From: Chlorokybus atmophyticus
Lineage: Eukaryota; Plantae; Mesostigma and Chlorokybus algae
NCBI GenBank assembly: GCA_009103225.1
Contig: RHPI01000017.1
Location: 1 to 64,000, forward strand
Direction: 5' to 3'
DNA length: 64,000 nucleotides
Shown: piece by piece, positions 1-54,369 of the stretch
Numbering within the stretch: the first letter of the stretch is position 1
Layout: each line of letters opens with the position of its first letter
Position numbers and translations under genes: made by a program
The notes under the pieces: model-generated
Told to the model about the DNA's origin: nothing
The model's database searches: none
The model's input: only the letters and a program-made list of their open reading frames with translations

Positions 1-1183
1 TGCATACACGCGCGTAAGCACATGCACGCACACACACGTAAACATACACTGCGTGTATGCACACATGCATACACGCATGACTATGTACACGCATTCGCGC
101 GCCTACAAGCATTGTGTGGGTGTACTTTCAGCACATACATACACAAGTGCTTACTCTCATGACACCTGCAAGCAGGCGTTGTATAGATGCCAACTGCTCG
201 ATGAATGGCACCATCCATGCCTCCTCTGCCACTGGCTCACTGGAGTTGCTTGAAGCAACTTCTGGTTGGCAGCACTTCACTTGAGCATCATGCTCAGTCG
301 TGCAGGCGGATGATCCGCCTGCACGACTTCTTCAAGTCAGCTTGCACCAGCAACTATGCAAAGTACTTCATGTGAGTGACTACTTTGACAGCTAGCCAAG
401 TCACAGCTGCGGACACAAGGCACGTAGCTTCTGCACAAAAGTTACCATGCTCAGTTGCATAGATTAACTACAATTGTGACCAAGCTAGCAGCCTTCAGCT
501 GCCGACTCGGTATGCCTGCACAAGACAAAGGTCTGCATGCTTATCAATCGCAAGCATATTTGTGTAGCAACAATTACGTCAGTTGCCAGCAGCTGTTCAC
601 ACTGCAAAGCAAACACATGCATTCGCAACTTGCTCTCATGCATGTATAAACACCAGCAGCATTTCAACAGCAATTGCTGCCGGCAGGTCAAGCAAGAGGC
701 GCCCATCTCACAAACTACCAGTAGTAAGCCAACCACAACCTCAACCGCAACCTCAACCGCAACAGTAACAACAGCAGCAGCGGCCGCTGTCACACTGCGC
801 ATGCTTGCACGAAGACTACAGTAACAATGCTACGGTACATGAGTGCTTTGGCTTCCAGCAGCAGCGAAGCAACATTCGACAAGCAACCCGCCGATTACTA
901 CCACGGCCCGCACCACCCCACCGCCGCCGCCGCCGCCGCCAGCTTGGACCGCAGCACCAGCAACGACAGCTCAGCAGATTGCATTGACCAGCATGCGCGG
1001 ATGACTACAAGCTGCAGGCTGCGAGTTCTGCTGACGTACGCTCGATCCCATCCGTTGAGTCAGCGGTATTTTAGTAAGCAGCCGGTCGCCGTACCATTCA
1101 TGGTTCGTAAGCAATGCACCCTATGCATGCGTACTGTGCATGTGTACTAACAAAGTCCTCTGGCTTACAGGCGCGGAGCACGC

Positions 1184-1470
1184 GACCAGCACTGGTCCTG
1201 TCGCTGGCACAAGACCAAGACTGGTGCGCTACTGACCGCCTTGGTACCGGACCAGTGCTGCGCTGGTACATGTACGCAGGCCGCGGGGCAAGCGACCAGC
1301 CCTGGTCCTTCCGGTTGCACGCGTACGGTACCAATGCTGCACTGGTGCATAGGCCGCGGAGCATGCGACCAGTCCTGGTCCGGTTATTCGAATCAGGTCG
1401 TCCGGCTGCGGGGCCGGACCACCAGTGGTCCGGTCATGCCGGACCAGTCGCGGCACTGGTACGCCACAGC
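1184..1470. repeat. Array of short palindromic sites, consensus GACCAG-N2-CTGGTC
   Basis: Perfect copies at 1184-1197, 1294-1307 and 1367-1380, a degenerate copy at 1213-1226 and a variant CCGGACCAC-CA-GTGGTCCGG at 1414-1433. Most copies are preceded by GCGG(A/G)GC. Confidence 0.85.
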
Positions 1471-1643
1471 GTACCAGACGGGGTCTACGGGCCGCGTACG
1501 ACTGGTCGGCGCGTAAAAAGCCCTGTGCTAAGAGCGGGGTGTTAAAAAAGGGCTAAGAACTTGGAACTCTGTAAGCAGGCAGCTAAGAGTGGTTCAAGAT
1601 CTTAGACAAGGTTGAACGTACCCAGGCTTGCTAAAGTCTTCAT

Positions 1644-3930
1644 CTAAAGCCTTGGCAGCGATACACCCATAGAATCTGCCTCTTTTGCGCATGTCGTCGC
1701 AGACAGTGACAAACTGTTTTTCTCGATAAGGACAGCCGGCCGGAGTCCAGATGATTGACAACGCTCATGATATGGGGGGGTTCGAGTTTGGTAAAGTTGT
1801 CCTATAGATTCAAGGAAATGCCCTGCGCTATGTTCAGCTTTCCATCGGCCATAAACAAGTCTTCTTTGCTGTGCAGCACATGGAAAAAGCGCTGATATTC
1901 TGGCTTTGAGAGGCCGAGATCCATTGCAATCCTGCAGTAGCAATGTAATTTAGCGAAAATGTAGCAAGCTGTATCGGATGTTGTGCACTGTTTACACATA
2001 CAGTTTTAAAGTCGTACATAACATGGACGCGCTTGGTGTGGGGGACTTTAGCCACCTCGTCATCCGTTGGAGGCGTTAGGGACTCTCACAAGATGACCAT
2101 CCATGACCGTGCGCAGTCAAGCCACGCTTCAGCCCCCCTTGTCTTGCGGGTTTGCCCAATGGACAGCTTAAATGGTTGACCATGCTGTTTCCAGATGTCA
2201 CGCATGGCGTGCATGACCCCCAATGGCGTGGACTTTTGTCGCAGCTCATCCTGCAAGTTGTGCAGCCTACTCAGGTTGAGGATCTGAAGTCTAGGGATGT
2301 TAGTCACGACCTGTCACATGTAGAGTTGTTGGTTTGATACTAAAGGTATCATAACTTGACAACAACAAAGCAGCCTATTTCCATCCTTTGAGACGCCCAT
2401 TTTGGATCATCTGGATGACCATGTTGCCTGCACTGATATATTGTCAGCGAGTGATTCCCGCACAGGATCTCGAACTGCCATCTTTTGTTCGACGGGTCCT
2501 GCAAAAACTCGTCTGCTAGCGGTTGACGCCATTCTGTGGGTCCGTCAGTCTTTTCGAGCACCAATCCAATCCACCGTTTGTAGCTTGGCAGGCCAGCATC
2601 GATCTCGCCCTCCACAAGCTTCAGCCTAGCCTCGGTCACCGGTCTCACGGAATGGCCCGGGCGAGCAAGCATCATCCGATCAACGGGAACATTAAAAAAG
2701 GTGTTCCCTCCAGAAGTTTGAACCAAAGGGGGCAGCACCAACCGACTCAGCAGGCCTGAAACATAACAAGCAAGCGACTATCGAATACCCTATGGCAACG
2801 CACTTAGTAATTGTGCCTTGAGTTAATGGACGCAGAGTAATGACAAACAGGCCAAAGCCGAATACAATAGCTCGCTTTTGTCACTGGTCTTAATGACAGG
2901 TGAGTAGCCTGCAGGTTTGCCACTATCGGAATTATCTGAATCTTTTTATGTGGACGTGGAAGGCTTGGTTGCCCTTGCTGAGTGACGCGCTGTTATCGGG
3001 CAGGTATGCAAAGCATAACAAGAGTAATGGATGTGTCAAGCCCTTGACATTGATGTGGTATACCATAAGCTACCTCGCAGCCATTCGAAGAACTTTTCGT
3101 TCAAGTCGTCTGTTGGATCCACAGATGCTTCAGCACCCTTCGGTTAACACTTGCTGCAAGATCCATTAAATCGAGCTCGTTCTCTGCCTCAGCTTCGTCT
3201 GACATGAAACCCCTCGCTTTGGACAACATCAGAATGTTCGGCTTATGACACAATGACGTCATTGTCGTCGTTGATATCGCTGCAAGGCAACCCGAGACAG
3301 TATATGGACTTCCATCGGAGCACCACGCTCAAAGTAGGGCGTAGGTAGATATGTTGCCCTGTGCACGGTAAGCTAAGCCGGATCTTGGAACTCATGTAAC
3401 CCACGCTTATAAAGACAACGCTCACCTTACGCTATACGTTAAGACGGTAATTTCCCTGACCCATGTACCGCAACTTTCAAACATGTTGGCGCTCAGCTTG
3501 ACCTATTAATTTCAAAACTGCAACGCTTGGTACGAGGCTGACTTTGATTGAATTTTGCTTTTTAGCCCATGGCAACCTTAAATTGCTATCTGTCAACACA
3601 AGCTTGTCACATACTTGTAAACATCGCACACAATTCAGATCAGAGACATCTGCTGCACACCCTTGGTTACTCACATGAGTAGATGATGGGTTCATCTGCA
3701 TTACTGCTGACGCTAAAATCTTCTTGGTCTTGCTCTTTGTTGTCGTTGGGTTGATCGTTTCTGGTGTCTACTTGCTTCTTGTCCTGCTGTTATCATTGGA
3801 AGAAATCTCAACCGGCTTTTCCAGCTTTTTAAAACTGTCAGGTGTCTTCTGCCAAGGAGTCTTGTCTTGTTTCTTCTTCGTAGCACCTTTTTTCGGCTGC
3901 GTGCCTGCAGGCTTTCGTTGCGGTCCCTAG
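1644..3930 (-). pseudogene. Multi-exon ParB/Sulfiredoxin-like domain gene, decayed, probably transposon-borne
   Basis: ORF 2349-2741 contains HSVRPVTEARLKLVEGEI...WQFEILCGNHSL, resembling the ParB-N RxV and GNH motifs. Downstream segments include RLHNLQDELRQ and SVVNHLDSGRLSLS. A Lys-rich exon begins after an AG at about 3925. GT-AG introns and several in-frame stops are present. Confidence 0.55.
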
Positions 3931-4019
3931 CCAGGGCTAACAATTGCCAGGGGTTGTCTCGGTTCACAAAGTAGTAAGTTCATATGTGCGAAGCAATTGT
4001 ACTTTACTTGAAAACTCTA

Positions 4020-4350
4020 AGCGCAGGAAGTTAAGGGAGGTTTCAGATTTTAAACTAACAAGAGCAGGCAGCTAAAGAAGGTCTAGGATCTTGAACCTTT
4101 CTTAACTTGGAGTAAAGGGAGGTCCAAGATCTTAAACCTCCAAGAACAGGCAGCTAGGGAAGGTTACGATTGTGAACTTGAAAGAGCCGGCAGCTAAGGG
4201 AGGTCCAATCTTGGACCTCCTCTAACTGTAAGTCAAGGAAGGGTTCAAGATCTCAAACCTCCAAGAACAGGCAGCTAAGAGAGGTCTAAGATTTTGGACC
4301 TCCAAGATCAGGCAACTACTCCATAAGATCTTGGAACTCCAAGATCTCAG
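4020..4350. repeat. About 7 degenerate 40-45 bp units with near-palindromic core AGGTCCAAGATCTTGGACCT
   Basis: GCAGGCAGCTAA...AGGTCYAAGATCTT(G/A)(G/A)ACCT recurs through the interval. The same motif also occurs at about 1575-1615, 3370-3390 and 8620-8645. Confidence 0.85.
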
Positions 4351-4599
4351 CAGCAGAACAAGAAGCAGCAAGAGGCGTACTGGAATGGTGGGGGCAAATG
4401 TGAACGCTTCGAGCTGCGCGAAGTAGTGTCCTCCTGTGCTTTCTCCCCATCTGGAGTGTCCTTGTTTGCACTGCATAGCAGTATACACTATTAGATGCCA
4501 TTGTCTATAACGGCAATAGCAGTTAACGACAAGGTGTTGCTGGTGGCTGTGCCGACAACAAGGTACAGCTACCAGCAATGTACTAGTGTACCAACAATC

Positions 4600-5030
4600 A
4601 ACTACAACAGCAACTTCAACACAACAACTCAGTAACAGCGCAGCAACTTCAATTCAACAATCAGTCAATAGCAACTGGGACACAACACACAGCAATTCAG
4701 CAACCAGTTGATTGTTGCGCGCACAAGTTGCTGTGCACAGAATTCCACTACAATTAGTAACAATAGCAACTGGGACACAACATACAGCAACTTAGCAATC
4801 AGTCGATTGCTACGCACACAAGTTGCTATGCGCAGCAATCAACTACAATTAGTAACAATAGCGATTGGGACACAACACACAGCAATTCAGCAACCAGTTG
4901 GTGCGCACGCAAGTTGCTGTGCGCAGCAATCAACTACAATTAGTAACAATACCGACTGGGACACAACACACAGCAATTGAGCAACCAATTGATTGCTGCA
5001 CACACAAGTTGCTGTGCGCAGCAATCAACT
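4600..5030. repeat. Tandem repeat, about 95 bp period, about 4.5 copies
   Basis: AGCAACTGGGACACAAC-like anchor at 4670, 4765, 4860 and 4951. Confidence 0.85.
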
Positions 5031-5449
5031 ACAAAGGAATACAATGCTGGTGGTGGTGGTGGTGGTGCTATAGCGGTAACAATCAGCAGCGGCAGCAGCA
5101 GTCACAAGCAAGCATAGTAGTAACAAACACTACCAACAAACACAACACAAACCTAGTCGACTTGCGCTTTGACCCCCCCATGCTGCTGCACGCACGCCCA
5201 CGCCCTGCACCGGCCCCTGCCGCCCACGCCCACGCCGCCCCAACTAACCATGTCCCCACACACGGAGGCGCCGCTTCTCAAACTCCTACACCCCTCAAAG
5301 CCTCAACACCGCCTCCGCCCCTGCCAACGCCGCTAACGCCCCCGCCAACGCCACTGCCGCCCTCGCTAAAGCGCCCCTGAACATTAGGGTTTCTGGCTAT
5401 GGCTGCCGAGGCCAAAAACCTAAGTGGCTGGGCGCCACCTCTCAAACCA

Positions 5450-5512
5450 CGAGAGCAACTCTGTCGCAGTAGCTATCATGGTATGAGAGCTACTGCGACA
5501 GAGTTGCTCTCG
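5450..5512. repeat. Perfect 25-bp inverted repeat (hairpin) with 13-nt loop
   Basis: CGAGAGCAACTCTGTCGCAGTAGCT (5450-5474) and AGCTACTGCGACAGAGTTGCTCTCG (5488-5512) are exact reverse complements. Confidence 0.95.
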
Positions 5513-7452
5513 CAGTATGAGAGGTATCATATCTTGGAAAAAGCGAATCAATAACTTAATAGTAATTGATTATTATATACATGATTGCCGATGAGTTGGT
5601 AACCGTCGATTTTTGGTCTCATGTGATGGTGCGTTAACCTCCGCATTACTCAGCCTTTGCACAAGACAGTATGCAAGGTCATATCATAGTGTTGAAGGTA
5701 ACAATGTGTTAATTTGATGCCACTTTGATTTTTATTGTCATACTCTTGGTGTTGAATTATTTTCAATTAACTACAACCAACTACTATCTCCATATAATTT
5801 CATTGAAATATAGACTGTGCTATAGACTATTGCTCAATAAAACTCTACAGTAGATATGTATATTATCATTGAAATTGTTACGTAATGCAATAGAAGCGTT
5901 ACGTAACACGCGTATCATCAATTGTACGCATCAGTCATCACTCACGGCATATTACAAGTACACATGCCAAGCATTACGTGACACCTTACGCATTGCAATC
6001 AGCGTACACTTCATTCAATTTTGATATAACACGACAGATCTATAATATCATCTACGCAATAATCACATGCAACAATTATAGATTGGCAAATAGACACATT
6101 ATTATCATGTTTGTGCACAGAAAAAACCAACATTACATGTAATTATTATGGATTGAAAATTAGCACTTTATTATTTGTGCAGAAAAAAAAACCAGCATGA
6201 TGCGTGTGCTGGGCTTCACTGAAACCACTTTGCGAAAAGCGGTGTAATCACCGTTCTACCATCGAGTGGGTTCTATAAAACTAAACACGCGCAACATGCT
6301 ACTCTACATAGCGCACACATAAGTATCTGTACCAATTATACTCTTATGCAGCGCAAGCATTGGGGCGAGAGCGAGCAATACAATAAACAAATGTCGTCGT
6401 CCGTTTGATATATTGATGGTCGAGTATAGACATAGTAACTTAGATCAACAAATGGAAAACTATGCTTCCTAGTTGCGACATTAATCGCGCGTTGTACCCT
6501 AACCCCTAATCCTAACCCCCTCACTCGGTGAGCTCAACTCCAGTGCAGCTGGTCGGCGGCGGCGGTCATGTACTTGTTGGCGGCGGCGGCGGTGTTGTTT
6601 TCAGCTGGGCGCTAGTGTGTTTCAGTAGATCCCACAGTGTAGAGTGTAGCTAAAGCTTGCAAGTTGTAATTTGCAAGTTGAAAGACCTAATGCGGTAGCT
6701 GGTAAGTGAGTACTGGCTTTGGGCGGTGGTATGGGCGGCGATGTGGGGGCCATATGGGGTGGCGAGAGCGAGCCAGGTGAGTTGAAGCTTGCTGCTCTAC
6801 TTGACCGTTAAAACGTCTTTAAGCTAGTTTTAGCATAAAACACTGAGGATATAAAGACTTGCGGTAAGGGTTGCGCTGTCCCAGCGCTCATGCAAGAGGG
6901 TTTGATAAGCGGGAGCATACCTGGCGCCACCTAGCAGGTACAGTATCCGTGCGTTATAGTCTTGTATGCACTGTCTGACAGTTGAAAATTGATATCACTG
7001 TAATGCACACCACACGCTAGTTGCTGCAGCAGTAAATCCTGTGCTGGTCATCAGCAAAACCGAAAAGCGCAACATATAGAGCTGCATGCACACAGCAAGT
7101 TACATTAAGCAGAGACATTTGCACACACACCCATGTTGCTTATGTGATTGTTCCATGCATGGTAAGCACAATGTACTGCAGCAGGGGAGCTGCCCCTTGG
7201 TAAATATACAGTTGGCATGTACTGGCACACAGTTATCATTGATCATGCAACATCCACATACAAGAGCAAACGCGTACACATATACACAGATGTTGCAACC
7301 TCATTACTGTGTAGTTCTTGCAGTTGCTTATGTATCTAGATGGTATTGTCACAACCGCACCCAAAGCCCTTCAGCTTGGGGTGTTGAAGTTCCTAGTCTG
7401 CAAGACTGTGTTACTTGCATTCTGGGTCCATTGCTTGTCAGGCAGCATACAT

Positions 7453-7759
7453 GAGATCTTGGAGGTCCAATAACTTCAATCGTTGTGCGTCACTAGACCT
7501 TCAAGATCTCAGGTCGTCTATCCCTCGATGCCAGAGATCTTAAAGGTCCATTAACCTCACTCGTTGTGTGTTACTAGACCTTTAAAATCTCAGGTCATCA
7601 ATCCCTCTGCCTGAGATCTTAAAAGTCCATTAACCTCACTCGTTGTGTGTTACTGAACCTCCAAGATCTCAGGTCGACAATTTCGCTCATTTCTTGGTGC
7701 CTGAGATCTTAGAGGTCTACTAACTCTATCATTGTGTTATACTAGACCTCTACAATCTC
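7453..7759. repeat. Four tandem stem-loop units (about 17-bp imperfect stems, about 24-nt loops)
   Basis: Units at 7453-7510, 7534-7591, 7613-7670 and 7703-7759 follow GAGATCTTRRAGGTCYA-loop-TAGACCTYYAAGATCTC. Confidence 0.9.
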
Positions 7760-10700
7760 ACCACCTTAAGCCCTCAAAGAACTCACTTTATTGTCTTGCC
7801 TTCAGGTGGACTGTTGGTCGTATATCAAGCGGCTTAGCCAAGAACATTGTCAAAGTCTGTGGCAATTCAACCGCGACAACATCGCTGGTACTTAAAGATC
7901 TTTTGACTAAGCAACCGTTGCTGCAAGCTGCCATCCAACACAACGAAGACCTTCAGGCTGTTATTGATGCCCCAGCCCTTTGCACTGTTGCCAAAATGTA
8001 TAGAAAAGCTTATAAAGAAGTTTAAGCAACAAGATCAGAAGCTCATCGTCCTGCACGAGCCGTGCTCGTTAAAACCGGTAGCAGTGTGTTGCTGACAATC
8101 TAAAAAGATGCACGTGTCGTGCAGAAAGTCGCTGCACTTCTTAACATCAAACGTTACCGGTTCTCTCAGCTGACATCCATTCGGAATGACTGGAGCCTGA
8201 AGCAGCGTAGCAAACGCAAAGACAGCTTGCGTGTGGCCGTACGGAATTTGATCCAACAGTTTAGGCATGAGAACACTAGAGAGTCTGCATCCAAACGCGA
8301 TCAAGTTCACGCTCGAGATGAAGTCACTAACAAGAGGCAGCATAATATCAAATTCTGTAAAAGATATCTAAAAGGCACCACGCACATAGAGCTGTTTTTA
8401 AACTTTAAAGAGCAGCACCCGAAAGTTCAAGCACAGCATTGGTCGTTTGACAAGCTGAAACCTTACTATATTGGAGGACGAGACGTTCGTCATGTATGTG
8501 TTTGTTCAGTACACACAGAAAACAAGGAGATGTGGGACGCCCTTACCAATTTTCTGCGCCTGCGGCATATTGATAGTTGTCATTGTGCTTGTGAATACTG
8601 TAAGGTAAGCAAGCTAGCAGTTACTCGACCTCCAAGATCTTACAAGCCGGCTGCCTGTTGACATATTGTTTAACAGGTTCAGAAGACTTGCGGCTGCAAC
8701 AGTCCTAATCATCCAATGTACAGCAGGTGTTCATTGGCTTGCAAAGGGTTTTTGAGCCATCCAACAGACGCTGTCAACTCTATCATGTGCCCAAAGGAAC
8801 CTGGTGAAGACTACCATAAAAAGCGATGTGTGCAAGGAGAATGCAGTCGTTGTGGTTGGGACAAGCCACTTTTAAACTGACCTATCGATCTGCGAGACGT
8901 CACTACGCGACTATGTTCGTCCCTTTATAAAAGCAAAAGCAGAGAGGGCGCGCTGCTGATGGTTTTGTCAAAGAGTACGAATGCGTGGACTTTGCCAAGC
9001 AGTCGCTTACTTACTTGGTATTCCGCATGTGATACCGACCTATGCTGGAGGACTTTCGCTGGCACGCGATCCCAGGTTCGTGGCAAGCTTCTCCGCAACG
9101 ACAGTGCTTGCAGACGTTTAATCGCGGCACCATTGTCACGATGAGTGACTTTCTGAAAAACTATATCATTCGACCAAATTACGAGCTGCTGCAGCAGCAC
9201 TTTCAATCCGCACCTGTAGGGATCTATGTCATGATAGTGCATCGTCACGCGCAAATTGAGGTCAATGGCATCGAGTCTACAGATGAGGAGCCTGTGCGCA
9301 TAAAAGAGGTAAAGCAGCATGTGTTATGTTAATACACCTATCATAGCTAACTTGCCCGCTGGCCTGGTTTAACTCAGCCGTGTTTTACGCAGGTGCACTT
9401 CTTTATAACGGATGACACTATCAAAGACAGCTTCATGGTGCATTGTTGCTTCAGAAGACTCCTGGGGGGGTATCGGTGCAGGGACATTGCTGCACACAAA
9501 GTTGTCAGTTGGAGTGATACTTGTAGCGTACAATTCAAGTGCGCAAAACAATTCGGACAGATAGCAAGGTTTGGAGTGCCTGTTCCCACGACCTTTGCAT
9601 CGGCTGTTAATTGCGAGGGCGACCCTGCGGCTTATTGTCATATAAAGCTGGGATGGCATTATCCTTGCCCTCAGCACGGTAAAAGAGAACACGACGGCCA
9701 GGGAGGAACATCAAAGCACCTTCTCGACAGGGCAGTGCTACAGGGAGAACAGATAGTGAATGCTGAGTCCGCAGCATATTACGCCAATGAGCACCTGGGC
9801 CGAGGAGCTGTATTCACGTATGTATCTTAAGAAGGCGAGGCGTGTGTGCAGAAGCGCTTTTTTCACCTTTTGAACATTGACGAGGTTGTGCATAAACTGA
9901 AAGGAAGCAATTACCGGGCAGTGCCAGGCACTATGAAGTTTCAGGTCGTGCGAGCAACGGGTGAGGCGGATCGCTTCATGTCCCGTGCGCTCTCTTGCTT
10001 CTGTGCACCATGTGTCAAGGAGCTGCATTCTAGCTGCGTTAGCAAGGAGTATGCGGGCAGGTGGAAGCAGCAGGTGCTCGTGGCTGGAGATGATGAAGCG
10101 GAAGAGGCTGAGCAAGAGGTAGGCATTTCTCAGATCTTGGAAGTGCAGCAACTGAACATTCGGCACATGTAGCTGAATGTCTTGTGAGACAGTGCTGAGC
10201 CTGCAAGTTAATGAAGGTTTAGTATCCTGCATCGCAAGCTGTCTGTGCACCCTTGTACACAAATGTCATGATAGACATTGCTGAGCCTGCAAGTTAATGG
10301 ACGTCCAGCATCTTGCAATGTGTGCCGATGCAAGCAGGGTACTGCAGTTTCCGTAATCCGAGTGCTTGCTGTCTTATAGATGCTAATGCTAAACCAAGAG
10401 ACGCTGGCGTTGACCTTGAAGAAGGGGAATCTCTTCGTTGTATCTTCAGACAGGAGCGCTGAAGATCACAACAAAGATGCACCTTATTTGATCCTTCAAT
10501 GTGTGGAGGAGGCAGAAAGAAGTCGTCAATCCACAACCCGTGCGGACAGCCACGGCAACGGGGTGCTGCCGGACACCCTATACGTTATAGGAGTATATTT
10601 TCGGCGACTTTCGCAACAACATGTCCCAGTCAATAGTTGCCAAAACGGTCTTTGTGGTTCCTACCGCCTCAACCTCACAAAAAGGCAAGAGTACCAGCTT

Positions 10701-10867
10701 ACTTACTGCGGTGCGCACCCAAGGTCACGTTAGAGCGGGAGTCCGAGAGTGAACGACTTACGCGCACTAAGTCTAAGCTGACGACATGGAAAGGTATAAG
10801 GGAGTCGTTGTTTCGCATAGGGACGAGCTGCAGGAGGCCATTCTTGAGGTGTTGTGAAGTAAATTAG
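7732..10867 (+). mobile_element. Sola2-like DDD transposase gene, multi-exon, with frameshifts (likely inactive)
   Basis: Motifs RKD; SFDKLKPYY..RHVCVCSVHTEN (CxCxxHxN); SDFLKNY at 9144 (DFxENY-like); WSDTCSVQFK at 9513; HGKREHDGQGGTSK at 9675-9716; SCFCAPC. GT-AG introns, e.g. about 10118-10379. Confidence 0.65.
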
Positions 10868-11142
10868 CTAGGGTTGTACATTTGCTTGGCTAAGTGTAGA
10901 TTGTTTGCCAGGTAATGCAAGTTGCTATAGTGGATGTTGAATCATGTTTTCCGTGTATAATGTGCTGCCGTGGATGTCGCTTCATGTATCTTGAAAAGTT
11001 GCAAGTAGTGTAAATATCATCATGTCTTTATGTAGGAATTAGCTCATTGGTTATGATGAGTTTAATGGGCATTCGAGATAAAATCTTGTGCAAATTGCAA
11101 TAACAGCTGTGTTTAGCCTACCCTAGGCCCGTTTTTATAACT

Positions 11143-11818
11143 TTGAAGCGCCCAAGCCATTTGCAAGAAGTGTCCCCGCAGATCTTGCTACACGCCTTCA
11201 GCGTGCCAGGAGCCAAGTTTGCTGCCCAGGAGAACGCTTGGATGACAACCAAAATTTTTGAGAAGTGGATTGAGGAGCTGGCAAAGTGGATGGCAGGAGG
11301 CAACAACCCTTCCAACCCTGCACTGCTAATTGTGGACGGCCATGTGAGCAGGTACAACCCCACCATGATACGCTTCACACAAGACCACGGCCTGCACATT
11401 CTGGTCTTGCCACCCCACACCACTCATCGGCTGCAAGTATTGGATGTGTCATGATTCCATCCGTTCAAGGAGCAACACAGGAAAGAGTACATGCAGAGGC
11501 ATGGAGCAGGTATAACTGGGAGCTCAGCAGGAAGGAGTTCTTAAAGTTGTTCGTTACCCCTTTCTATGTAGGACTTTCCCCTGCCAACATCATCTCTAGG
11601 TTTCGTGCCTGTGGGTTATGGCCTCTCAATATACACGCATTAGACAAGTACTTCACGGAGCAGGAGACAACCCCACCACCACCAGGACTGTTTGCTTTAC
11701 CGGAGGCTATGGAGGTGGGAGATGGAGACAACAACAACAACAACAACAACAACACGGAGAAGGCACCACCCAACACAGAGGCGCCAGTGAAGAAGAGGAG
11801 AGGGTTCACAACTGCACA
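11143..11818 (+). mobile_element. pogo/Fot1-like DDE_1 transposase, 5' portion, frameshifted
   Basis: AWMTTKIFEKW...ALLIVDGHVSR...LVLPPHTTHRLQVLDV, then NIISRFRACGLWPLN in another frame. Interrupted at KKRRGFTTAH by an LTR. Confidence 0.85.
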
Positions 11819-12157
11819 TGTAACGGAGTGCTACCTCTATAGAGGTTCCCCGCCCTTGTTTAGGATTAAATAAGGGTCCCAACGGGTATATACAACCAAT
11901 TAAGCCGTATTAGGGCCGTTAACCTAGTGTTAAGGCCCTAATGTAGTGTTACTTAACTGTAACACTGATATCGACATGAGACATGAGTCTCATGTCGATA
12001 TCAGCTGTATGGCGGCACTGCTAACGCAGCAGCCGCCATAGCCAGGGGATCTTCAACTTCGGCAGTTGCCCCTGGCGGCGGCGGTGTGGTCGGCGTGGCT
12101 GGTGGTGGTGTTGGGGTAGGGGATTAAAGGGAGGAGGTAGCACCCCCTCTCCTTACA
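11819..12157 (+). repeat. 5' LTR (339 bp)
   Basis: Starts TGTAACGGAGTGCTACC and ends CTCCTTACA; near-identical to 18809-19130. Confidence 0.95.
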
Positions 12158-12158
12158 T

Positions 12159-12170
12159 TGGTATCGGAGC
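12159..12170 (+). promoter_or_regulatory. Primer-binding site, tRNA-iMet type
   Basis: TGGTATCGGAGC immediately after the 5' LTR; one G:U-compatible change from the canonical TGGTATCAGAGC. Confidence 0.9.
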
Positions 12171-12344
12171 ACGGGCGGCAAGGGGCCTGTGGGAGGGGCG
12201 ACGGCAGGCTGCAGGGGCGGCGGCAGGCCGCAGGGGCGGCGGCAGGCGGCAGGCGGCGGCAGGCGGCAGCGACGTTAAACTAGTGGTAGTTAAAGTGTTT
12301 TATGTTTTAACTATAATAGTTAAACGCTGCTGCTGGTGCCTAGC

Positions 12345-13256
12345 CTAGCCTAGCCTAGCCTGGCTTGCCATGCCATGCATGCCATGCCTAGCCTAGCATG
12401 CCTGTCCTAGTCTAATTTGTTATTGTGTGAAGGGAGCCGGCCATTCAGGCCTATCCCTGAAGCATTGCATTGCAGCACAACACATAGTAAACATACATTG
12501 ATTGTATTATATTGTGTGTGTACCACCACGTGGATTCGTGGTGGTGTAAGGGTTTTTCTATTAATTTGGAAATTCCCTTGGGGGGGGCAGTTCGGTGGCA
12601 ACATCGACTGTCTCAGTGCCGCCATTTTGAGCGGTGAGGCCGCCAGAATTTTCTGAGCGGCCGATATCAAACTCACCATTCACAACTGGTCGATATCGGC
12701 CAGTAAGGTCGATTTGACGAGATTTTGGCAGACTGTGTGTCAATCACAGTTGTGAATTGTGCTGGGTTGTACAAAGTGAAAACTTTGAGAAATCATAACT
12801 CTGCCTAGTCTAGCCTAGCTTGCCATGCCATGCATGCCATGCCTAGCCTAGCATGCCTGTCCTAGTCTAATTTGTTATTGTGTGAAGGGAGCCGGCCATT
12901 CAGGCCTATCCCTGAAGCATTGCATTTCAGCACAACACATAGTAAACATACATTGATTGTATTATATTGTGTGTGTACCACCACGTGGATTCGTGGTGGT
13001 GTAAGGGTTTTTTTATTAATTTGGAAATTCCCTTGGGGGGGGGCAGTTCGGTGGCAACATCGACTGTCTCAGTGCCGCCATTTTGAGCGGTGAGGCCGCC
13101 AGAATTGCTTGAGCGGCCGATATCAAACTCATCATTCACAACTGCTCGATATCGGCCTGTAAGGTCGATTTGACGAGATTTGGCAGACTGTGTGTCAATC
13201 ACAGTTGTGAATTGTGCTGGGTTGTACAAAGTGAAAACTTTGAGAAATCATAACTC
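12345..13256. repeat. About 455-bp tandem duplication in the retrotransposon 5' UTR
   Basis: Block from CCTAGCCTAG...GCCATGCC to GAAATCATAACTC occurs twice; the matching ORF-track peptides start at 12417 and 12872. Confidence 0.92.
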
Positions 13257-13650
13257 GTGAAACGTCGCGTGGATTCGCGCACGGTTTGTTGCAGAGTCAG
13301 TGTCTAGTTGAGAGGTGTGTGGAGAGCTCTTTTTGGGGTGTATACTCCACCGTAAAGCCTCAAAACTTGACGAGACAAAATCATTAGATTTTACCTGTAT
13401 TGCAGTGCACAATCTGAGTACTTGTGCACTTGCTAATGGCTGTCTTTGGGCAGATGTCTGACCAAGGAGAGGGAGGTGAGAAGTACTTTACCGTCCCTGA
13501 TTCATCGTCATCATACGAACCATCAAGTGATGACAAAGTGAGAGACTTCGACACGAGTGAGAGCTACAAGTCACTGAGAGTGACAAGGAGGAAGCTGCGC
13601 AGGATAGCGAAGCTTCTCCCAATCAATCTACTCAGAGTGGGCCAGCTACA

Positions 13651-14916
13651 ATGGACACACAGTCTGTCATTGGTGGGGCTATTGAGAAGTATGCGCGAGA
13701 GCGCAAAGCCTTGATCGATGCTCACCCACAGCTTCGTCAGGAAGTGTGGGATGCATGGGCGCAGACGGTTCGTGATGGCTATGAGACAGACTTTGCCACA
13801 CTCCCTCGTGCAAGCAAGGAGATGGTGATCCGCATGCTCGAGCATGAGCTGACGGACAACATCCCGCCACTCGTGCGAGGTGATAAAAAGGTGGCTGCTA
13901 TCATGACCGTATATGATAAGCCTCTCCCTTACCAAGGCAAGCGAATGGCGTCTGAGGCTTTGGCCAACTTGGGAGTGGAAACCTCACAGCGTTGCAAGGA
14001 CGTGTTCTGGTACTTGGGACCTAACTTGGAAGACAAGTTGACTGGCCGAGTGCAGTTGACGGCACGCCTTGATGCTATGCAGTCTGAGTTGGTGGCGCTG
14101 CGCCAACAGGTGGCGGGTGCTACTTCAGCAGCTGGTGCATCAGCGGGGCTGCCGGTTACAGCACTGAACAAGCCTGAGAAGTTCAAGCCCAACGGCAGTG
14201 TCAACATCCATGATTGGGTGGTCACTGTTGAGCACTATTTGACAGCACTGAAGCGCCCAGTTGGTGAGCACATTGCTGTTGCTGAGTTGCTCATGCCATC
14301 TGACGCTCTCGCCGAGTGGGCGAGGCAGACAGAGGATGGTGCGGCTAAGACAGTGGAGGCACTATTCAAGTTCCTTGTGGAGCGCTATGGTGGCATGGAT
14401 CCAGCTACTCAGGCTCGCAACAAGCTCAACAAGCTGCGACAGAATGGCAGAACGGCTTCAGTCTATCTGCAGGAGTTCCAAGCGTTGGTGGGCCGCGTGA
14501 ACAGTGGCCTCATGCCCATGGACAAGGCTGAGCAGTTTGAGTTGTACAAGCGCGGCTTGGATGCGCGTGTGCGCGATCAGCTGCAGTACAACACGGCAAC
14601 GGGACTTCCTTGGGTTCCTGAGGACTTGGCCCAGCTGCAGAAGCTGAGCGTGTATCTGTACAGTGATGACACGGCGGTGCAGGAAAAGGCACATGTGGCA
14701 GCTGCGGCCAAGCCGCACGGGGTGGGAGGAAAGCGTTACCCTCAGCCGAGTGCGCACACGGCAAAGAAGGCGAAGACATTCACGCCTCCGACCGGTGGCA
14801 CATCTGCTGGTGGTGCTACACCCGCTGCGGCTCGCACCTGTTACGTCTGTCACCAGCCGGGCCACATTGCGAAGAACTGCCCCGCCAAGAAGGGCAAGGC
14901 CAAGAAGGTTGAATAG
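13651..14916 (+). CDS. Gag polyprotein (421 aa) with C-terminal CCHC zinc knuckle
   Basis: KPEKFKP...DWVVTVEHYL; ARNKLNKLRQNG..ASVYLQEF; CYVCHQPGHIAKNC. Confidence 0.92.
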   Translation: MDTQSVIGGAIEKYARERKALIDAHPQLRQEVWDAWAQTVRDGYETDFATLPRASKEMVIRMLEHELTDNIPPLVRGDKKVAAIMTVYDKPLPYQGKRMASEALANLGVETSQRCKDVFWYLGPNLEDKLTGRVQLTARLDAMQSELVALRQQVAGATSAAGASAGLPVTALNKPEKFKPNGSVNIHDWVVTVEHYLTALKRPVGEHIAVAELLMPSDALAEWARQTEDGAAKTVEALFKFLVERYGGMDPATQARNKLNKLRQNGRTASVYLQEFQALVGRVNSGLMPMDKAEQFELYKRGLDARVRDQLQYNTATGLPWVPEDLAQLQKLSVYLYSDDTAVQEKAHVAAAAKPHGVGGKRYPQPSAHTAKKAKTFTPPTGGTSAGGATPAAARTCYVCHQPGHIAKNCPAKKGKAKKVE

Positions 14917-17900
14917 GATTACGCCGTGACTGATGTAGATGCGGTTGATAGCCAGTTGCTTGAGATGCAAGCAGCAAACTGGTTTGATGATCTGTCTCAA
15001 GTGCATGTAATGACACATGCATGGCAAGCACATGACAAGTTGCCACTCTTTGATGTTGAAAAAGTGGAAGAGAATGCTTGTGTGCTTGTACATGTGGAGT
15101 TCAACATGCTTACCGATGTGTTGCATGCATTGACTGAGTTGCAGAATAAGCACAGAACCTTGAGTATGGTGGTGATGGTGCCAAAGTATCATGGCCCATG
15201 GTTAAAACATACTCGCGGAGGGTCTGTGTTGAAGCAATTCAGCAAGCGTGAAACAAGGACAGTACGGTTGTCAGCCATATTGATCAACCCTCGCATTAGT
15301 CACGGACTCTTGGCTACATTTCAAGGACGGGTGGTACCTCTGTTGTGGACATTTAGTGGCACAATGCAAGGTGTAAACAGTTCGTTCTTGATTGACACTG
15401 GTGCAACACACAACTTCGTTGAGGAACAATGGGTTGTGCGCAACAAGATAGCGTGTAAACCCTCAGCATTTTCAGCTGCCGGTGCGGGGGGTGCGTTGCC
15501 AGTGAAAGGGGAAATAAAAATAAAATTAAAGATTGGTAATTATCATGCCACTCTTACTTTCATAGTGGTATCCATCGACATATCAGGTGTTGATGTGGTA
15601 TTAGGACAGGAATGGCAGGAAAATGTCAAAATGACATTTGATACTGGCGCACGCTTGTGCACAGTACAGAAAGGTCGTAAGCGTGTAACATTGTCTGTGA
15701 AAGGGTCACATAGCTTGGACCACAAGCAGACCGACCTTGCGCTACTCACTGCACTGCAAGTGAAACGTGCGTTGCGCAAAAATACACCGGCTTTTCTGGT
15801 ACATTTGACGTCGTCGGACGACTTTGTGCCGGGAAATACAGAAGGTGTTGCAGACATCATTGAGGAGTATCAAGATGTGTTCTCAGATAAGTTGCCAGGC
15901 TTACCTCCTGATCGAGGTGTCGGACACACAATATCACTCATTCCTGATAGTGAGCCTCCGTTTCGGCCTATATATAGGCTGAGCCCCCGAGTGAGGGGGG
16001 AAATGGAAACTCAAATCAAAGAGTTATTGGAAAAGGGATTGATTGAATCGAGTTCTTCACCCTTTGGCGCGCCTATCTTGTTGTTGATGAAAAAGAATGG
16101 AAAGCTGCGCATGTGTGTGGATTACCGTGCTTTGAACAAGATCACGGTAAAGAATCGATACCCGCTGCCCCGGATTGATGATGTGTTTGATACACTGTCG
16201 GGAAATGCGTACTTTAGTACGTTGGACTTGACAAGTGGGTATCATCAAATCCGGATTCATCCTTCCGATGTTTACAAGACAGCATTCAGAACACCTTCGG
16301 GCCATTATCAATACAAAGTGTTACCTTTTGGATTGACTAATGCGCCCGCAGTGTTTCAGAAGGAAATGAATAAGATTTTTGGTGGCATACTTGGCAAGTA
16401 TGTTATGGTTTACTTGGATGACATCATTGTCTTTAGTAAAACCAAGGAAGAGCATAAGCAGCACTTGGAAGCGGTGTTCGCCTTGCTGCGTACACATCGC
16501 TTGTTTGCCAATCTTGCGAAGTGTGACTTCTGCAAGACGGAGTTGCCATTCTTGGGGCACATTGTGAGCGGTGCGGGTGTGAAACCTGACCCTCGCAAAG
16601 TGCAAGTTGTAAAGGATTGGCCTCAACCTAAGAATATCCATCAGCTGCGATCATTCTTGGGATTGGCAAACTACTTTCGCAAGTTTATGATGGGGTACTC
16701 CACAGTAGTGGTGCCTTTGACAAAACTGTTGCGAAAAGATGCTCCATTCTTATGGACANGAACAAGAAGCTGCTATGCAACAGGTGAAGCTAGCTTTGAC
16801 TTCTGCTCCAGTGTTGGCATTGCCAAACTGGGACAAGCATTTCACTGTGGTTAGCGATGCGTCCACCCTTGGGTGTGGTGCAGTACTGTTGCAAGATGGC
16901 AGACCATGTGCTTATGAGAGTAGGAAGTTCATCCCAGCAGAGGTGAATTACACTACCACCGAGCAAGAGTTGCTTGGTATAGTACATGCTCTGGAAACAT
17001 GGCGATGTTACTTGGAGGGGGTTCAGTTCACAGTGGTGACTGATCATAATCCATTGGTGTATTTCTCAACACAGCAAAACTTGTCACGAAGGCAAGCCCG
17101 CTGGAATGAGTTTCTGTCTCGGTTTACCTTTGAGTGGGTATACCGGCCAGGCAGAACCAATGTTGCTGATCCTCTGAGTCGTTGTCCATCATTGTTGGCA
17201 GCTATGCGTGCGCAATTGCTTGCGACGCGCGGTACATTGCCACCGGATGATGAGTTTGTGCAAGCTGTTGTGCAAGGGTATGCTTTTGACCCATGGTTCT
17301 CGTCAGAGGACAACGTGCAAAAGCTGAGCAAACGAGACAACTTGTATTATGTGGGCACCAGCTTGGTAATACCTGACCATGCTGGATTGCGTGCGAAATG
17401 CATAGCTGATGTACACGATCCACCGTACGCTGGGCACTTTGGCAGTCGCAAGACTGTTAAAGCAGCGCAACAGTTGTATTGGTGGCTATCGTTGCCTGTT
17501 GACGCAAAACGGTATGTGGACACGTGTGACAAATGTCAGCGTGATAAGCCGTTACGTCAGAAACCCGCTGGTTTGCTGCGACCATTGCCTATTCCTGATG
17601 GCAAATGGGAAAGTGTGAGTATGGACTTAATTACTGAGCTCCCAGAGACAGCATTAGGTCACACTGCGGTTGCAGTTTTCGTGGATCGTTTGACAAAAAT
17701 GGTCCACATTGTCCCTTGTCGCACGGAGATAGGCTCTCGTGAGTTGGCGATGGTTTTTGTCGCGTCTGTGTTCAAGTTACATGGCTTGCCCCGCAACTTT
17801 GTGTCAGATCGCGATCCGCGATTTGTGGCTCAGTTTTGGAAGTCGGTATGCAGCTTCTTACACATTCAGCAGAACATGAGCACTGCTTACCATCCACAGA

Positions 17901-18685
17901 CGGATGGTCAGACAGAACGCGCCAATCAAGTGATTGAGGAAACCATCCGGCATTATGTGAGCCCGAATCAGAGTGATTGGGATATTTATCTCCCAATGGC
18001 TGAGTTTGCGATCAATAATGCATGGCAAGAGAGTGTGCAGGAGACTCCGTTCTTCTTAAATTACGGAGTGCATCCACTGAGTCCTGCGAACATTAAGTTG
18101 CCCGCTACTGACGTGACTCGCGTACCTGCAGCGCGCGAGATGGCTTCGGCCATGCAGGATAGGTTAGCGTTGGCAAAAGACTGTCTGCGCGCAGCGCAAG
18201 ACAGACAAAAAGCCCAAGCTGATGCGCATCGTAGAGAGGCCAACTACGATGTGGGCTGTTCGGTGCTGTTAAGTACTAAAAATGTATCCATCAAGGGAGT
18301 GGGTACCCGCAAGTTTTTCCCTCGCTGGATAGGCCCTTTCAAAGTGACTGATCGGGTCGGCACTCACGCGTATCGCTTGGACTTGCCAAAGTCGATACGC
18401 ATTCACAATGTGTTTCACGCGAGTGTACTGAAACCATACCGTTCTGACGGTCGGGTTCAACCTCCTCCACCCCCCATTGCAGTGGATGGCGACGATACTT
18501 TCGAGTATGAGGTGGAAGCAATCCTCAGTCACCGTAAGCCTCGACGCGGACGCGCGCCGTCTTACTTGGTGAAATAGAAAGGGTATGGTGTTGAGCACAA
18601 CACGTGGGAGCCCGAAAGGAATCTTACCAACTGCCAAGAGATTCTTCGGGGGTACTGGAGTGCTGTGTCCACACGCGGACGGTAA
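14917..18685 (+). CDS. Pol polyprotein: N-terminal extra domain, protease, RT, RNase H, integrase, chromodomain (nonsense codon in chromodomain)
   Basis: LIDTGATHNF; LRMCVDYRALN, PFGLTNAP, YLDDIIV; VVSDAS..GCGAVL, TDHNPL; HDPPYAGHFG..CDKCQ, SMDLITELP, VSDRDPRF, GQTER; YEVEAILSH..YLVK*KGY..NTWEP. The apparent frameshift coincides with a single n at 16759. Confidence 0.92.
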
Positions 18686-18795
18686 AAGGGTGCTGGCAGA
18701 TATCTTTACCGCTTCGGCCCTGGTTCTCTCACTGCTTTGGTTCTCGGTAATCATGGTGGGGCTTTGCTAACCCTTCAATGAGGACATTGAAACCT

Positions 18796-18808
18796 AAGTG
18801 GGGGGGAA
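18796..18808 (+). promoter_or_regulatory. Polypurine tract
   Basis: AAGTGGGGGGGAA directly before the 3' LTR. Confidence 0.85.
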
Positions 18809-19130
18809 TGTAACGGAGTGCTACCTCTATAGAGGTTCCCCGCCCTTATTTAGGATTAAATAAGGGTCCCAACGGGTATATACAGCCAATTAAGCCGTAT
18901 TAGGGCCGTTAACCTTGTGTTAAGGCCCTAATGTAGTATTACTTAACTGTAACACTGATATCGACATGAGACATGAGTCTCATGTCGATATCAGCTGTAT
19001 GGCGGCACTGCTAATGCAGCAGCCGCCATAGCCAGGGGATCTTCTGCTTCGGCAATTGGTGCATGGCGTGGCTGGTGGTGGTGTTGGGGTAGGGGATTAA
19101 AGGGAGGAGGTAGCACCCCCTCTCCTTACA
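18809..19130 (+). repeat. 3' LTR (322 bp)
   Basis: Matches the 5' LTR apart from about 5 substitutions and one divergent block. Confidence 0.95.
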
Positions 19131-19135
19131 GCACA

Positions 19136-19470
19136 CCTGTTGACATCAGATGAGATAGCAGCAGAGCTGGAGAAGCTTGATGCAGAGAAGGAAGCAAAAG
19201 AGACAGCTAAGCAAGCCCGCAAGGAAGCAACACAGCAACGCAAACAGCAAGCAGCACAAGAAGCAGTGCAGATAGCAGAGAAGCTGACAACAAAGAAGAA
19301 GGAAACAGCCTTGAAAAAGATGCTTGCCGACCGGGAGAAGGAGAAGAGGAGTCAACAGAAGGCTGAGGCACAGGCTGAGGCACATGTTGAGGCACAGGCT
19401 GAGCAACAATTAAAGTAGGCAGAGAAAGAGCAGAGGGAACGCACAGCAAGAGAGGCAAACGAGCTGCTGA
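19136..19470 (+). mobile_element. pogo/Fot1-like transposase, 3' portion (charged coiled-coil tail)
   Basis: Removing the LTR element and one TSD restores the frame ...GFTTAH-LLTSDEIAAELEKLDAEKEAK... Confidence 0.85.
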
Positions 19471-35956: not shown

Positions 35957-38530
35957 CCGCCGCCGCCGCCGCCGCCGCCGCCGCAGCAGCAGCAGCCTGT
36001 ATCGCAGCAACAACAGCAGCCGCAGCTAACACTGCGTACAAGAAGGTGGGCCTTGAGTCTCTCATGTGGTTGCGTGCCTGCGTAAATGTGTGTGCACTCT
36101 CTCTTGCACGCGCCTGCATGTGCGTGCGTGTGTGCGTGCGTGTCCTCTGCAAGGTAAGGTTACAGGGCTTTGGCAGGCATAACAACTTAGGGGACTGTGC
36201 TGGAGCAGCTGATGGGCATATTTGACTTCGTGCGCAGCACAGTGACCTCGCTTCCAGAATCCGACATAAGGTTCATCTCTTAACTTCGTGCAAACTGGTG
36301 TCATTTGCAGTCACACTCCAGCAGCGTAGTAATCCAGCTGGTGTCATGTCAGGGTCATCTGCAGTGCTTCAAGACAGAGTGAGTGTTGAACACCAATGCT
36401 GCGGCACCGAAAGGAGCTCAAAAGCATGACTTGAGGAGCTGTTCTCGAAGCAGCTGCGCTGTGAGCTTGAGATCCCTGTCATGCGCTGCGCTTCCACGTG
36501 TGTGGGACATACTCGCGATGCTCGACCAGTCACCACAACACAGGTCACCAACCTAGAAGGAAGGCGAGAGTGCAGATGCCTGGGCGCCGCGGTGAGTGCA
36601 TGCGCGTGTGTGGGGGAGCACAGAAGCCCGAGTTGCTTCATGATGTGAAACGCATTTGGTGAAGCACACAGTAACTTCACTGCTGAGGCTAAGGGTGTTG
36701 AGCAACAAGTTCATCGACGTGGCCTGATTGCCCCCCATACACCTACATGCAGCGCAAGGTGTAAGTAAAGTCAGCATCACCATCAACCACGGACTGTGCA
36801 ACATCTAGCATAGCATTCTCTTTGCCAGCGCACGGCACACCCAAGTGTTGCCGCCACCAAACCTGCACAAGTAGCGAAAGTGTGCCTCGAAATAAATAGC
36901 CTTGACAAAGGGGAATGTAACCATCTACCACAAGGGCCATTCAAGCTTCCACACATTATATACACGTAAGTACAACAAGCATTTTGTTCCCAGGCCGTAA
37001 CGAGAGGTTTCCCACATGCACGGTGTCTGTGGAGACAAATACCACCACAGCTAGTGGAACAGAATGCGTGATCTGTTGTACCTTTCAAAGCTGTAAACTC
37101 AGCTGCTTATTTTCGCTATCCTCTGGGTTGTGCAACAGTCAGATCATGGATATCGGTGAAAAAACTTCAAGGGCACTATTCTTGAGAGTGGTTTCGTGCC
37201 TTGCCTCCCGAGCTAAGTATAAACTTGCAAACCACCCCGTGCACGCGTGTTTAAACTTCCAGATCTAAAATGCCCAAAATTACTAACAAGCTACTCAACT
37301 CGTCAACTCTAGCATTGGTTGTTCTCACAGGGTCATGTAAGTGCACATTGCACTATGCATGTTTGCGCACATGAAAACTTAATCAACACAAAAACAAACT
37401 GTTTTATTGCTAAAGGTCTGCAACACTTGCCTGCAGCAACAGCTTGAGCTGTGTGTAGGCATTGGGCGCAGAGTCCCTGCAATTAAGGCAAGAAGCTTCT
37501 CGAGTGAGAGTCCCTCCATTGCTAGCAATCAACACAGCTAGACCACAGTACAAGCAGCAGTTCAACTTTTAAACTTTAGCGATTGAGTTGAAAAGAATGG
37601 AAGTTGCTGGGCAGAGCATTAGCAGCTAACACATACTGCTGGTGTCTTACAAAACACCAACCAGCTAGCATCTGTTTGTGAAACCTTCTCGGGATGAGAT
37701 GTTGTGTTAGACCATAAAAGCCGCTGTGGCCATGGGAGAGTATGGTGTATGCCAGTGGGATAGGCCAATTCCAGTGACGCGCACACAAAAACTCACATGA
37801 AGAGATCATGCAGGTCACTTGGGGCGCTTAGTAGTGACTACGGCCTGAATACATATACCCACACACAAGAGGAACCCCACAACACGTTGTGCCTACCCCA
37901 ATTCGGAATATGGACCTTGTCGCATCACCGTAACTTTGACAATGTGCAAAACAAAACAACATGTGCATGCTGCGCATAGACGAGAATTACTACTATATTG
38001 ATATGTTACCTTCTAAGGCTCGCCGGGCAATCCACCTGCAAGTTTTGCTGTATCTCGCGCCAAAGGTACAGCAATACAAGCGCAGTTGCCGGTAAGTACT
38101 CCCACTTTAATGCGCGATCTACCACAACCCGCCACAAGCTATGCTGAGATGACGCCGCTTGCCCAAAACTTGTTCAGCATAATAGTTTGCTTTCTCATGG
38201 CATAGCTTGCGTCGCGTTATACATCTGCAACAGTATGTTGTAGTTTAGCCCTAAACACCACTAGGTATGCATCTGCAAGTATGCACGCTGTGGACAATGA
38301 GATTGACGACGCACAACATTCGAGCTATAACTCACTCTTGCACTCTGAGGTCGGCAGGTGACTGTGTCGGGAAACTTGCATATGAGACATCCTGGTGCAA
38401 CTCAATGGTAATTGAGACTGGCTCATTGTCGATGACCGCACTTTGCACTGCAATGCGCCTCGTCACTTGCATGTACGAGTGAAACCCATGCCTACTTGTG
38501 CGCGAGAAGAGACATCGAGGTGGAGGGGGG

Positions 38531-54337: not shown

Positions 54338-54369
54338 AATCCTAACCCTAACCCTAACCCTACCCTAAC
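54338..54369 (+). repeat. Interstitial telomere-like (CCCTAA)n tract
   Basis: AATCCTAACCCTAACCCTAACCCTACCCTAAC. Confidence 0.8.

Follow-up and report, generated by a model that had tools for sequence, protein, structure and literature searches.

A probable cargo-carrying Sola2 transposon, now decayed, with private palindromic sites in the alga Chlorokybus atmophyticus

The first 64,000 nucleotides (nt) of contig RHPI01000017.1 from the alga Chlorokybus atmophyticus (assembly GCA_009103225.1), hereafter the window, contain two divergent genes with GT..AG introns between roughly 1515 and 10857, both of them interrupted by in-frame stops and frameshifts. The right gene, judged by its sequence and by the modeled fold of its relatives, is a DDE transposase pseudogene of the Sola2 type. 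A palindromic motif is found in the non-coding parts of both genes and, two weak matches aside, nowhere else in the window. The region is probably one large, cargo-carrying Sola2 transposon, decayed and probably truncated at its ends, with the transposase on the right, a spliced cargo gene on the left, and palindromic sites (dyads) that would have served as docking sites for a protein encoded by the element. A preliminary description of this DNA had proposed one large transposon that combined a ParB-type accessory gene with dyad arrays. The composite layout and the arrays of that proposal stand, while its ParB part found no support and neither terminal inverted repeats (TIRs) nor a target-site duplication (TSD) could be located. 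It had also called the copy decayed, and the broken frames of both genes agree; no part of the copy can still function.

The right gene as a Sola2-type transposase pseudogene

Five coding pieces can be followed in the right gene (Table 1), with GT..AG-bordered introns at 8607-8673, 9309-9392 and 10118-10379. The frame is broken by in-frame stops at 8023, 8104, 8878, about 9030 and 9828, and by frameshifts near 8880-8940 and 10680-10800. The stop-free pieces had no match in Pfam, PHROGs, NCBIfam or PADLOC, a word search with the transposase exon (limited by candidate length) returned no match, and metagenome and viral scans contained no relatives of the gene. An exhaustive phmmer search with the exon at 9393-9827 recovered 22 relatives, all of them eukaryote-like and scattered across eukaryotes. 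The best of these is a transcript from Klebsormidium subtile (P0002), whose tblastn match covers 9132-10079 with an E value of 8e-36. The N-terminal part of the gene at 8215-8517 aligns with residues 3-99 of a 721-amino-acid relative (P0016), and the C-terminal pieces, judged by eye, match relatives as well.

The transposase alignment conserves the motifs DFxEN, YRH, VKEHxFFxSDD, WSDGxxxQFK and YHGKxExD, and the copy in the window retains the D of DFLKN, the D of TDD, and HGKREHD. The right gene and the relatives P0016, P0013 and P0002 share five motifs that are collinear, as assessed by reading rather than by a formal score, with those of Sola2_DFa-2 and Sola2_PPa-1. In these two elements, from Dictyostelium fasciculatum and Polysphondylium pallidum, the motifs read DFKEN, (I)YHR, VKEHFDVFSD, WSDGAKHFKS and YHGKSDVD (PMC3627910, Additional file 3). 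An AlphaFold2 (AF2) model of P0016, built on a 20-sequence alignment, has a core with predicted local distance difference test (pLDDT) values of 75-94 and the topology beta-beta-beta-alpha-beta-alpha-beta. Foldseek, with probabilities up to 0.97 and E values of ~1e-3, matched this core to retroviral integrase cores, the IstA transposase and RNase H. Homology, five collinear motifs and the RNase H/integrase fold predicted for the relatives together mark the right gene as a Sola2-type DDE transposase pseudogene, in keeping with the preliminary description.

One other family assignment was set aside. The ESM Atlas pointed from the transposase exon to DUF7869, and intact relatives are without any Pfam match. 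Separately, a 2305-amino-acid gene model from the mollusc Nucella lapillus (P0001, KAL8577516.1) contains ~39 tandem copies, each of ~55 amino acids, of a transposase-family fragment; the model probably represents a satellite that arose from a transposase exon and was wrongly annotated as a protein.

A palindromic site shared by both genes

The motif GACCTCCAAGATCTY occurs 11 times in the window at no more than two mismatches, where 0.10 matches are expected. When up to three mismatches are allowed, 21 of the 23 matches to the 14-mer in the window fall within 1556-10300 (by our own estimate, chance would give ~5 in the whole window and ~0.7 in this interval), and the two matches outside it, at 37141 and 37803, are weak. 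The motif is therefore common to both genes and essentially absent elsewhere, as had been claimed. Stacking 20 sites revealed a dyad of ~24 base pairs (bp) with a BglII/GATC core and the consensus GGAGGTCyrAGATCTyrGACCTCC, and we take GGAGGTCCAAGATCTTGGACCTCC as the candidate binding-site sequence.

The sites are arranged in two arrays, one on the 5' side of each coding region (Table 1). The left array lies ~70 nt 5' of the left gene's first coding piece and includes near-perfect 22-mers at 4199-4220 (GGAGGTCCAATCTTGGACCTCC) and 4326-4347, and the right array stops 40 nt short of the 3' splice site at 7803. Site spacing is ~41 nt in both. The arrays resemble each other over ~25 nt only (local score 35, against 19.3 ± 2.3 in shuffles, maximum 28), and blastn found no cross-match between them. 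Because the likeness is confined to these ~25 nt, what the arrays have in common appears to be a conserved site and not a duplicated block. None of the dyad copies is in coding sequence; all are in the arrays, in introns or 3' of the left gene. Since the dyad is private to the non-coding parts of the two genes and common to both, it fits, along with the equal phasing and published precedent (see below), a single composite transposon that has since decayed.

In intact members of such a family, both genes would be transcribed divergently from the central region. The ~20 GATC/BglII-centered dyads, which are restricted to non-coding DNA, are most likely docking sites for a sequence-specific DNA-binding protein encoded by the element itself. 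This protein may be the N-terminal module of the cargo, which we prefer, or the transposase. By occupying phased dyads, it would allow the element to mark or regulate its own DNA or to assemble on it, and the bound protein might then recruit the enzymatic part of the cargo to the element's own chromatin or contribute to assembly of the transposition complex.

Three further observations concern the dyads and their surroundings. The 262-nt transposase intron holds, just after its dyad copy, two 56-nt direct repeats that are 82% identical (10176-10317). GATC is rarer in the window than expected from base composition (143 seen, 234 expected), and its density is 2.3 times higher inside 1550-10870 (40 sites) than outside, an excess that the dyads explain only in part. 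Finally, a single exact match to the 18-nt palindrome core turned up in viral contigs (L001), which we took for chance.

The left gene and the ParB question

The candidate cargo gene on the left is a pseudogene with in-frame stops at about 3768, 3101, 2086 and 1802 and a frameshift near 1790. Its first piece, 3926-3771, is a basic N-terminal stretch that resembles a nuclear localization signal, and the last pieces contain a stretch, LGLSKPEYQRF, that by eye looks like a helix-turn-helix. The preliminary description had assigned this gene to the ParB/Srx fold (PF02195). The 'ParB-like' piece is that at 2777-2352, which encodes 142 amino acids, and the ParB pattern seen by eye in the gene is VPVD..(R)..L..I...G....I.V....ILCGNHS. 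At the position that, by eye, is the candidate for the GxxR or arginine-rich motif that binds cytidine triphosphate (CTP), the sequence reads ILCGNHSLT, that is, GNHS without an arginine. Pfam detected no 2-oxoglutarate (2OG)-oxygenase, N6-methylase or SET domain in any piece of the gene. The ESM Atlas gave low recognition for the 'ParB-like' exon and was uninformative, and the look-alikes among phage single-stranded DNA-binding proteins that it suggested were discarded.

Profile and sequence tests of the ParB assignment came back blank (see below). The homology searches, run exon by exon, have low power for a decayed exon of 142 amino acids, and we therefore regard the ParB/Srx identity of the left gene as unconfirmed rather than excluded, and the pattern seen by eye as plausible.

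Weighing a single cargo-carrying element against its alternatives

Several results count against a single Sola2 element whose cargo reads the dyads. The left gene is short, coding for ~470 amino acids in five or six pieces, and is without a methyltransferase or oxygenase part. Its pieces had no match in Pfam at E ≤ 10 (the piece at 1647-1943 was run in all three frames), PHROGs, NCBIfam or PADLOC. The 'ParB-like' exon had no match in a phmmer search of the PDB at E ≤ 10, and no ParB was among the matches of tblastn at E ≤ 10 against 72,556 plasmids. Relatives of the left gene were absent from the word search, again limited by candidate length, and from the metagenome and viral scans. A single-sequence AF2 model of the 'ParB-like' exon had a mean pLDDT of 46.4 and was unusable for a fold search. 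With regard to the ends, there is no inverted match of at least 10 nt between the flanks at 900-1800 and 10300-11300, and TIRs of the Sola2 type (12-22 bp) were thus not found; no TSD is visible, and the ends of the element are undefined. The limits of 1560 and 10867 that had been put forward as ends accordingly fall away. In addition, blastn found no second copy within the window.

The copy is probably truncated at one or both ends, because no TIRs join the flanks, the sequence changes in character left of ~1515, and a pogo-like fragment lies to the right. We rejected an insertion of the element into this adjacent pogo-like element, as the left flank is without the N-terminal half of pogo.

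The most substantial alternative accepts a single transposon and assigns the dyads to the transposase as its binding sites, with the left gene a passenger that is not ParB-like and has no role at the dyads. Multiple short transposase-binding sites are known inside DNA transposons, such as the subterminal repeats of hAT, CACTA and Mutator elements, and the alternative can also draw on the failure of all ParB tests on the left gene and on the array that lies directly 5' of the transposase coding region. We nevertheless consider it unlikely: the arrays are located mid-element, on the side of the central spacer rather than close to the outer ends, the densest array, the one made of full dyads, lies against the left gene, and the red-algal parallel discussed below has its arrays beside a ParB-like accessory gene (bioRxiv 10.1101/2025.02.11.637652). 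It is quite unlikely that two unrelated decayed elements or genes simply lie side by side, both invaded by a separate short palindromic repeat, intron-borne or akin to a miniature inverted-repeat transposable element (MITE), that gave rise to the motif. The two genes do lack common TIRs or a TSD, some motif copies are in introns, and the region is a transposon graveyard in which a pogo DDE_1 fragment and a Ty3/gypsy element adjoin. However, the other 54 kb, which include other intron-bearing and repeat sequence, are free of the motif apart from the two weak matches, and on the 5' side of each gene the motif recurs symmetrically, at an identical 41-nt phasing.

A more specific version of the proposed mechanism, in which intact members encode a eukaryotic, transposon-borne ParB-type clamp that loads at GATC-core dyads as at parS and spreads over the element, we hold to be very doubtful. 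Such a clamp might bring in a modifier of DNA or chromatin to protect the element against silencing, or might tether excised copies; if true, a nuclear transposon of the green lineage would have put a bacterial partition module to new use. A pair of host genes driven from a bidirectional promoter would account for divergent genes with telo-box-like motifs and GC-rich leaders, yet it is scarcely credible here, being effectively refuted by the homology of the right gene to DDE transposases, and stops run throughout both genes with transposons all around. The reading that we favor, as stated at the outset, is one decayed Sola2 transposon with a spliced cargo gene and dyads as docking sites.

Layout and surroundings

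The window as a whole is eukaryotic, has 50% GC and is rich in mobile-element debris. Its two divergent genes flank an AT-rich spacer (Table 1), an arrangement that agrees with the preliminary description. The spacer may be a bidirectional promoter region or may have been inserted later, and scans with Rfam and for tRNAs over the spacer and the rest of 1-12000 found no RNA gene. Each gene does carry the telomere-like motif and GC-rich leader that had been reported. On the left the motif is TTAGGGTT at 5384-5391, at the inner end of the leader, which in the sense of the gene (minus strand) reads AACCCTAA. CCCTAA occurs 14 times across the window, and the motif is therefore not specific to the element. 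A short telomere-like tract of the CCCTAA type is also present far from the element, at 54341-54363, and the motif is dispersed in the genome.

Table 1. Features of the two-gene region, in coordinates of the window
Feature	Position	Strand	Remarks
Degenerate 41-nt unit copies, one to two	1515-1615	-	Copy at 1550-1593; weak-armed AGATCT core at 1597; just 3' of left gene
Left (candidate cargo) pseudogene	1597-3926	-	Pieces 3926-3771, 3328-3104, 2777-2352, 2313-2089, 1933-1805, 1764-1597
Single weak motif copy, 3 mismatches	3380-3393	.	In putative intron of left gene
Dyad array, 41-nt unit x ~8, full dyad in each	3998-4350	.	Directly 5' of first coding piece of left gene; 8 units counted at 3998-4326
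Tandem array, 95 nt x 3.9, 86% matches	4592-5034	.	Between dyad array and left leader
GC-rich leader of left gene	5160-5400	-	67% GC; ends at AACCCTAA
Near-perfect hairpin, 89 nt	5437-5525	.	43-nt arms, 91% complementary; DNA fold dG -45.4 kcal/mol, z -12.8
AT-rich spacer between divergent genes	5526-6480	.	35.9% GC
GC-rich leader of right gene	6521-6620	+	63% GC; preceded by telomere-like CCCTAACCCCTAATCCTAACCCCC at 6497-6520
Dyad array, 79-81-nt unit x 2.9-3.8	7448-7765	.	Two inverted half-sites per unit, ~41 nt apart
Sola2-type transposase pseudogene (by sequence and modeled fold)	7804-10857	+	Coding pieces 7804-8606, 8674-8877, ~8950-9308, 9393-10117, 10380-10857
Perfect motif copy	8627-8641	+	Inside 67-nt intron 8607-8673
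Motif copy, 2 mismatches	10132-10145	-	Start of intron 10118-10379; absent from the preliminary description

The hairpin listed in Table 1 sits exactly on the border between the GC-rich leader and the AT-rich spacer and might represent the end of a foldback element or MITE, or else have a regulatory role as a structure. Every unit of the 95-nt tandem array has a short palindrome of its own, of the TAGCAATCAGTCGATTGCTA type (e.g. 4793-4812). Left of ~1515, the sequence changes to a 63% GC array of another palindrome. This stretch (1180-1480), which abuts the left edge, holds ~6 spaced palindromes of the GGACCAG..CTGGTCC type, such as CCGGACCACCAGTGGTCCGG at 1414-1433, and may belong to another, related element as its site array.

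On the right, the flank consists of a pogo-like DDE_1 transposase fragment (11143-11817 and 19131-19400, E 1.4e-12) that is split by a full Ty3/gypsy long terminal repeat (LTR) retrotransposon at 11818-19130. The latter encodes gag, protease, reverse transcriptase, RNase H and integrase, and its LTR repeats are 97-100% identical.

Comparison with known systems

The preliminary description took the pairing of a Sola2-like transposase with such an accessory gene to be undescribed. Both of its aspects are in fact published, as Sola2 passenger genes (PMC3627910) and as ParB-like accessory genes with site arrays in algae (bioRxiv 10.1101/2025.02.11.637652). Sola2 transposons of 10-15 kb with passenger genes were described in 2013 from dictyostelids (DFa-1/2/3 and PPa-1/4/5; Bao & Jurka, PMC3627910). 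Their passenger is the long, TnpB-like Fanzor1, their TIRs measure 12-22 bp, and their TSD is 4 bp and AT-rich (PMC3627910). The Chlorokybus copy resembles these elements in its five collinear transposase motifs, its large size, and the long multi-exon second gene beside the transposase. Unlike them, it has an unclassified protein without a Fanzor signature in place of Fanzor1, and the defining TIRs and TSD were not found in it.

The likeness to bacterial ParB-parS and its CTP clamp lies in the clustering of 16-24-bp palindromes beside the gene of the proposed binding protein and in the ParB pattern seen by eye. In contrast to the bacterial system, the gene described here is spliced and eukaryotic, has GNHS for GxxR and no ParA partner, and received no profile, sequence or fold support for ParB.

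A parallel in layout comes from the giant Plavaka (EnSpm/CACTA) transposons of red algae, which carry the accessory genes PAG1-3 (Bostrychia genome paper, 2025, bioRxiv 10.1101/2025.02.11.637652). PAG3 combines a ParB-like N-terminal domain, itself weakly supported (HHpred E 0.29), with a 2OG-oxygenase domain; it adjoins tandem arrays of inverted repeats that its authors propose it binds, and the accessory genes are reported to move among Plavaka, Mutator, Zisupton and Fanzor elements (bioRxiv 10.1101/2025.02.11.637652). Similarly, a tandem inverted-repeat array, the eightfold 41-nt dyad array, adjoins the candidate cargo gene in Chlorokybus. The two differ in that the red-algal elements use a Plavaka transposase, whereas a Sola2 transposase is found here in an alga of the green lineage, and in that PAG3 has an enzymatic domain while none is detectable in the left gene.

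New here is that a Sola2 transposase is combined with a host from the green lineage; the cargo-bearing type of element had already been published for algae. A dead and truncated copy adds little alone, and its value is as a data point for a family consensus of site sequence, 41-nt phasing and intron placement. A recent theme of algal genomics is cargo-carrying DNA transposons that appear to bind, and perhaps to modify, their own DNA. A Sola2 example in a green-lineage alga would add to the transposase superfamilies and hosts in which such accessory genes and site arrays are found.

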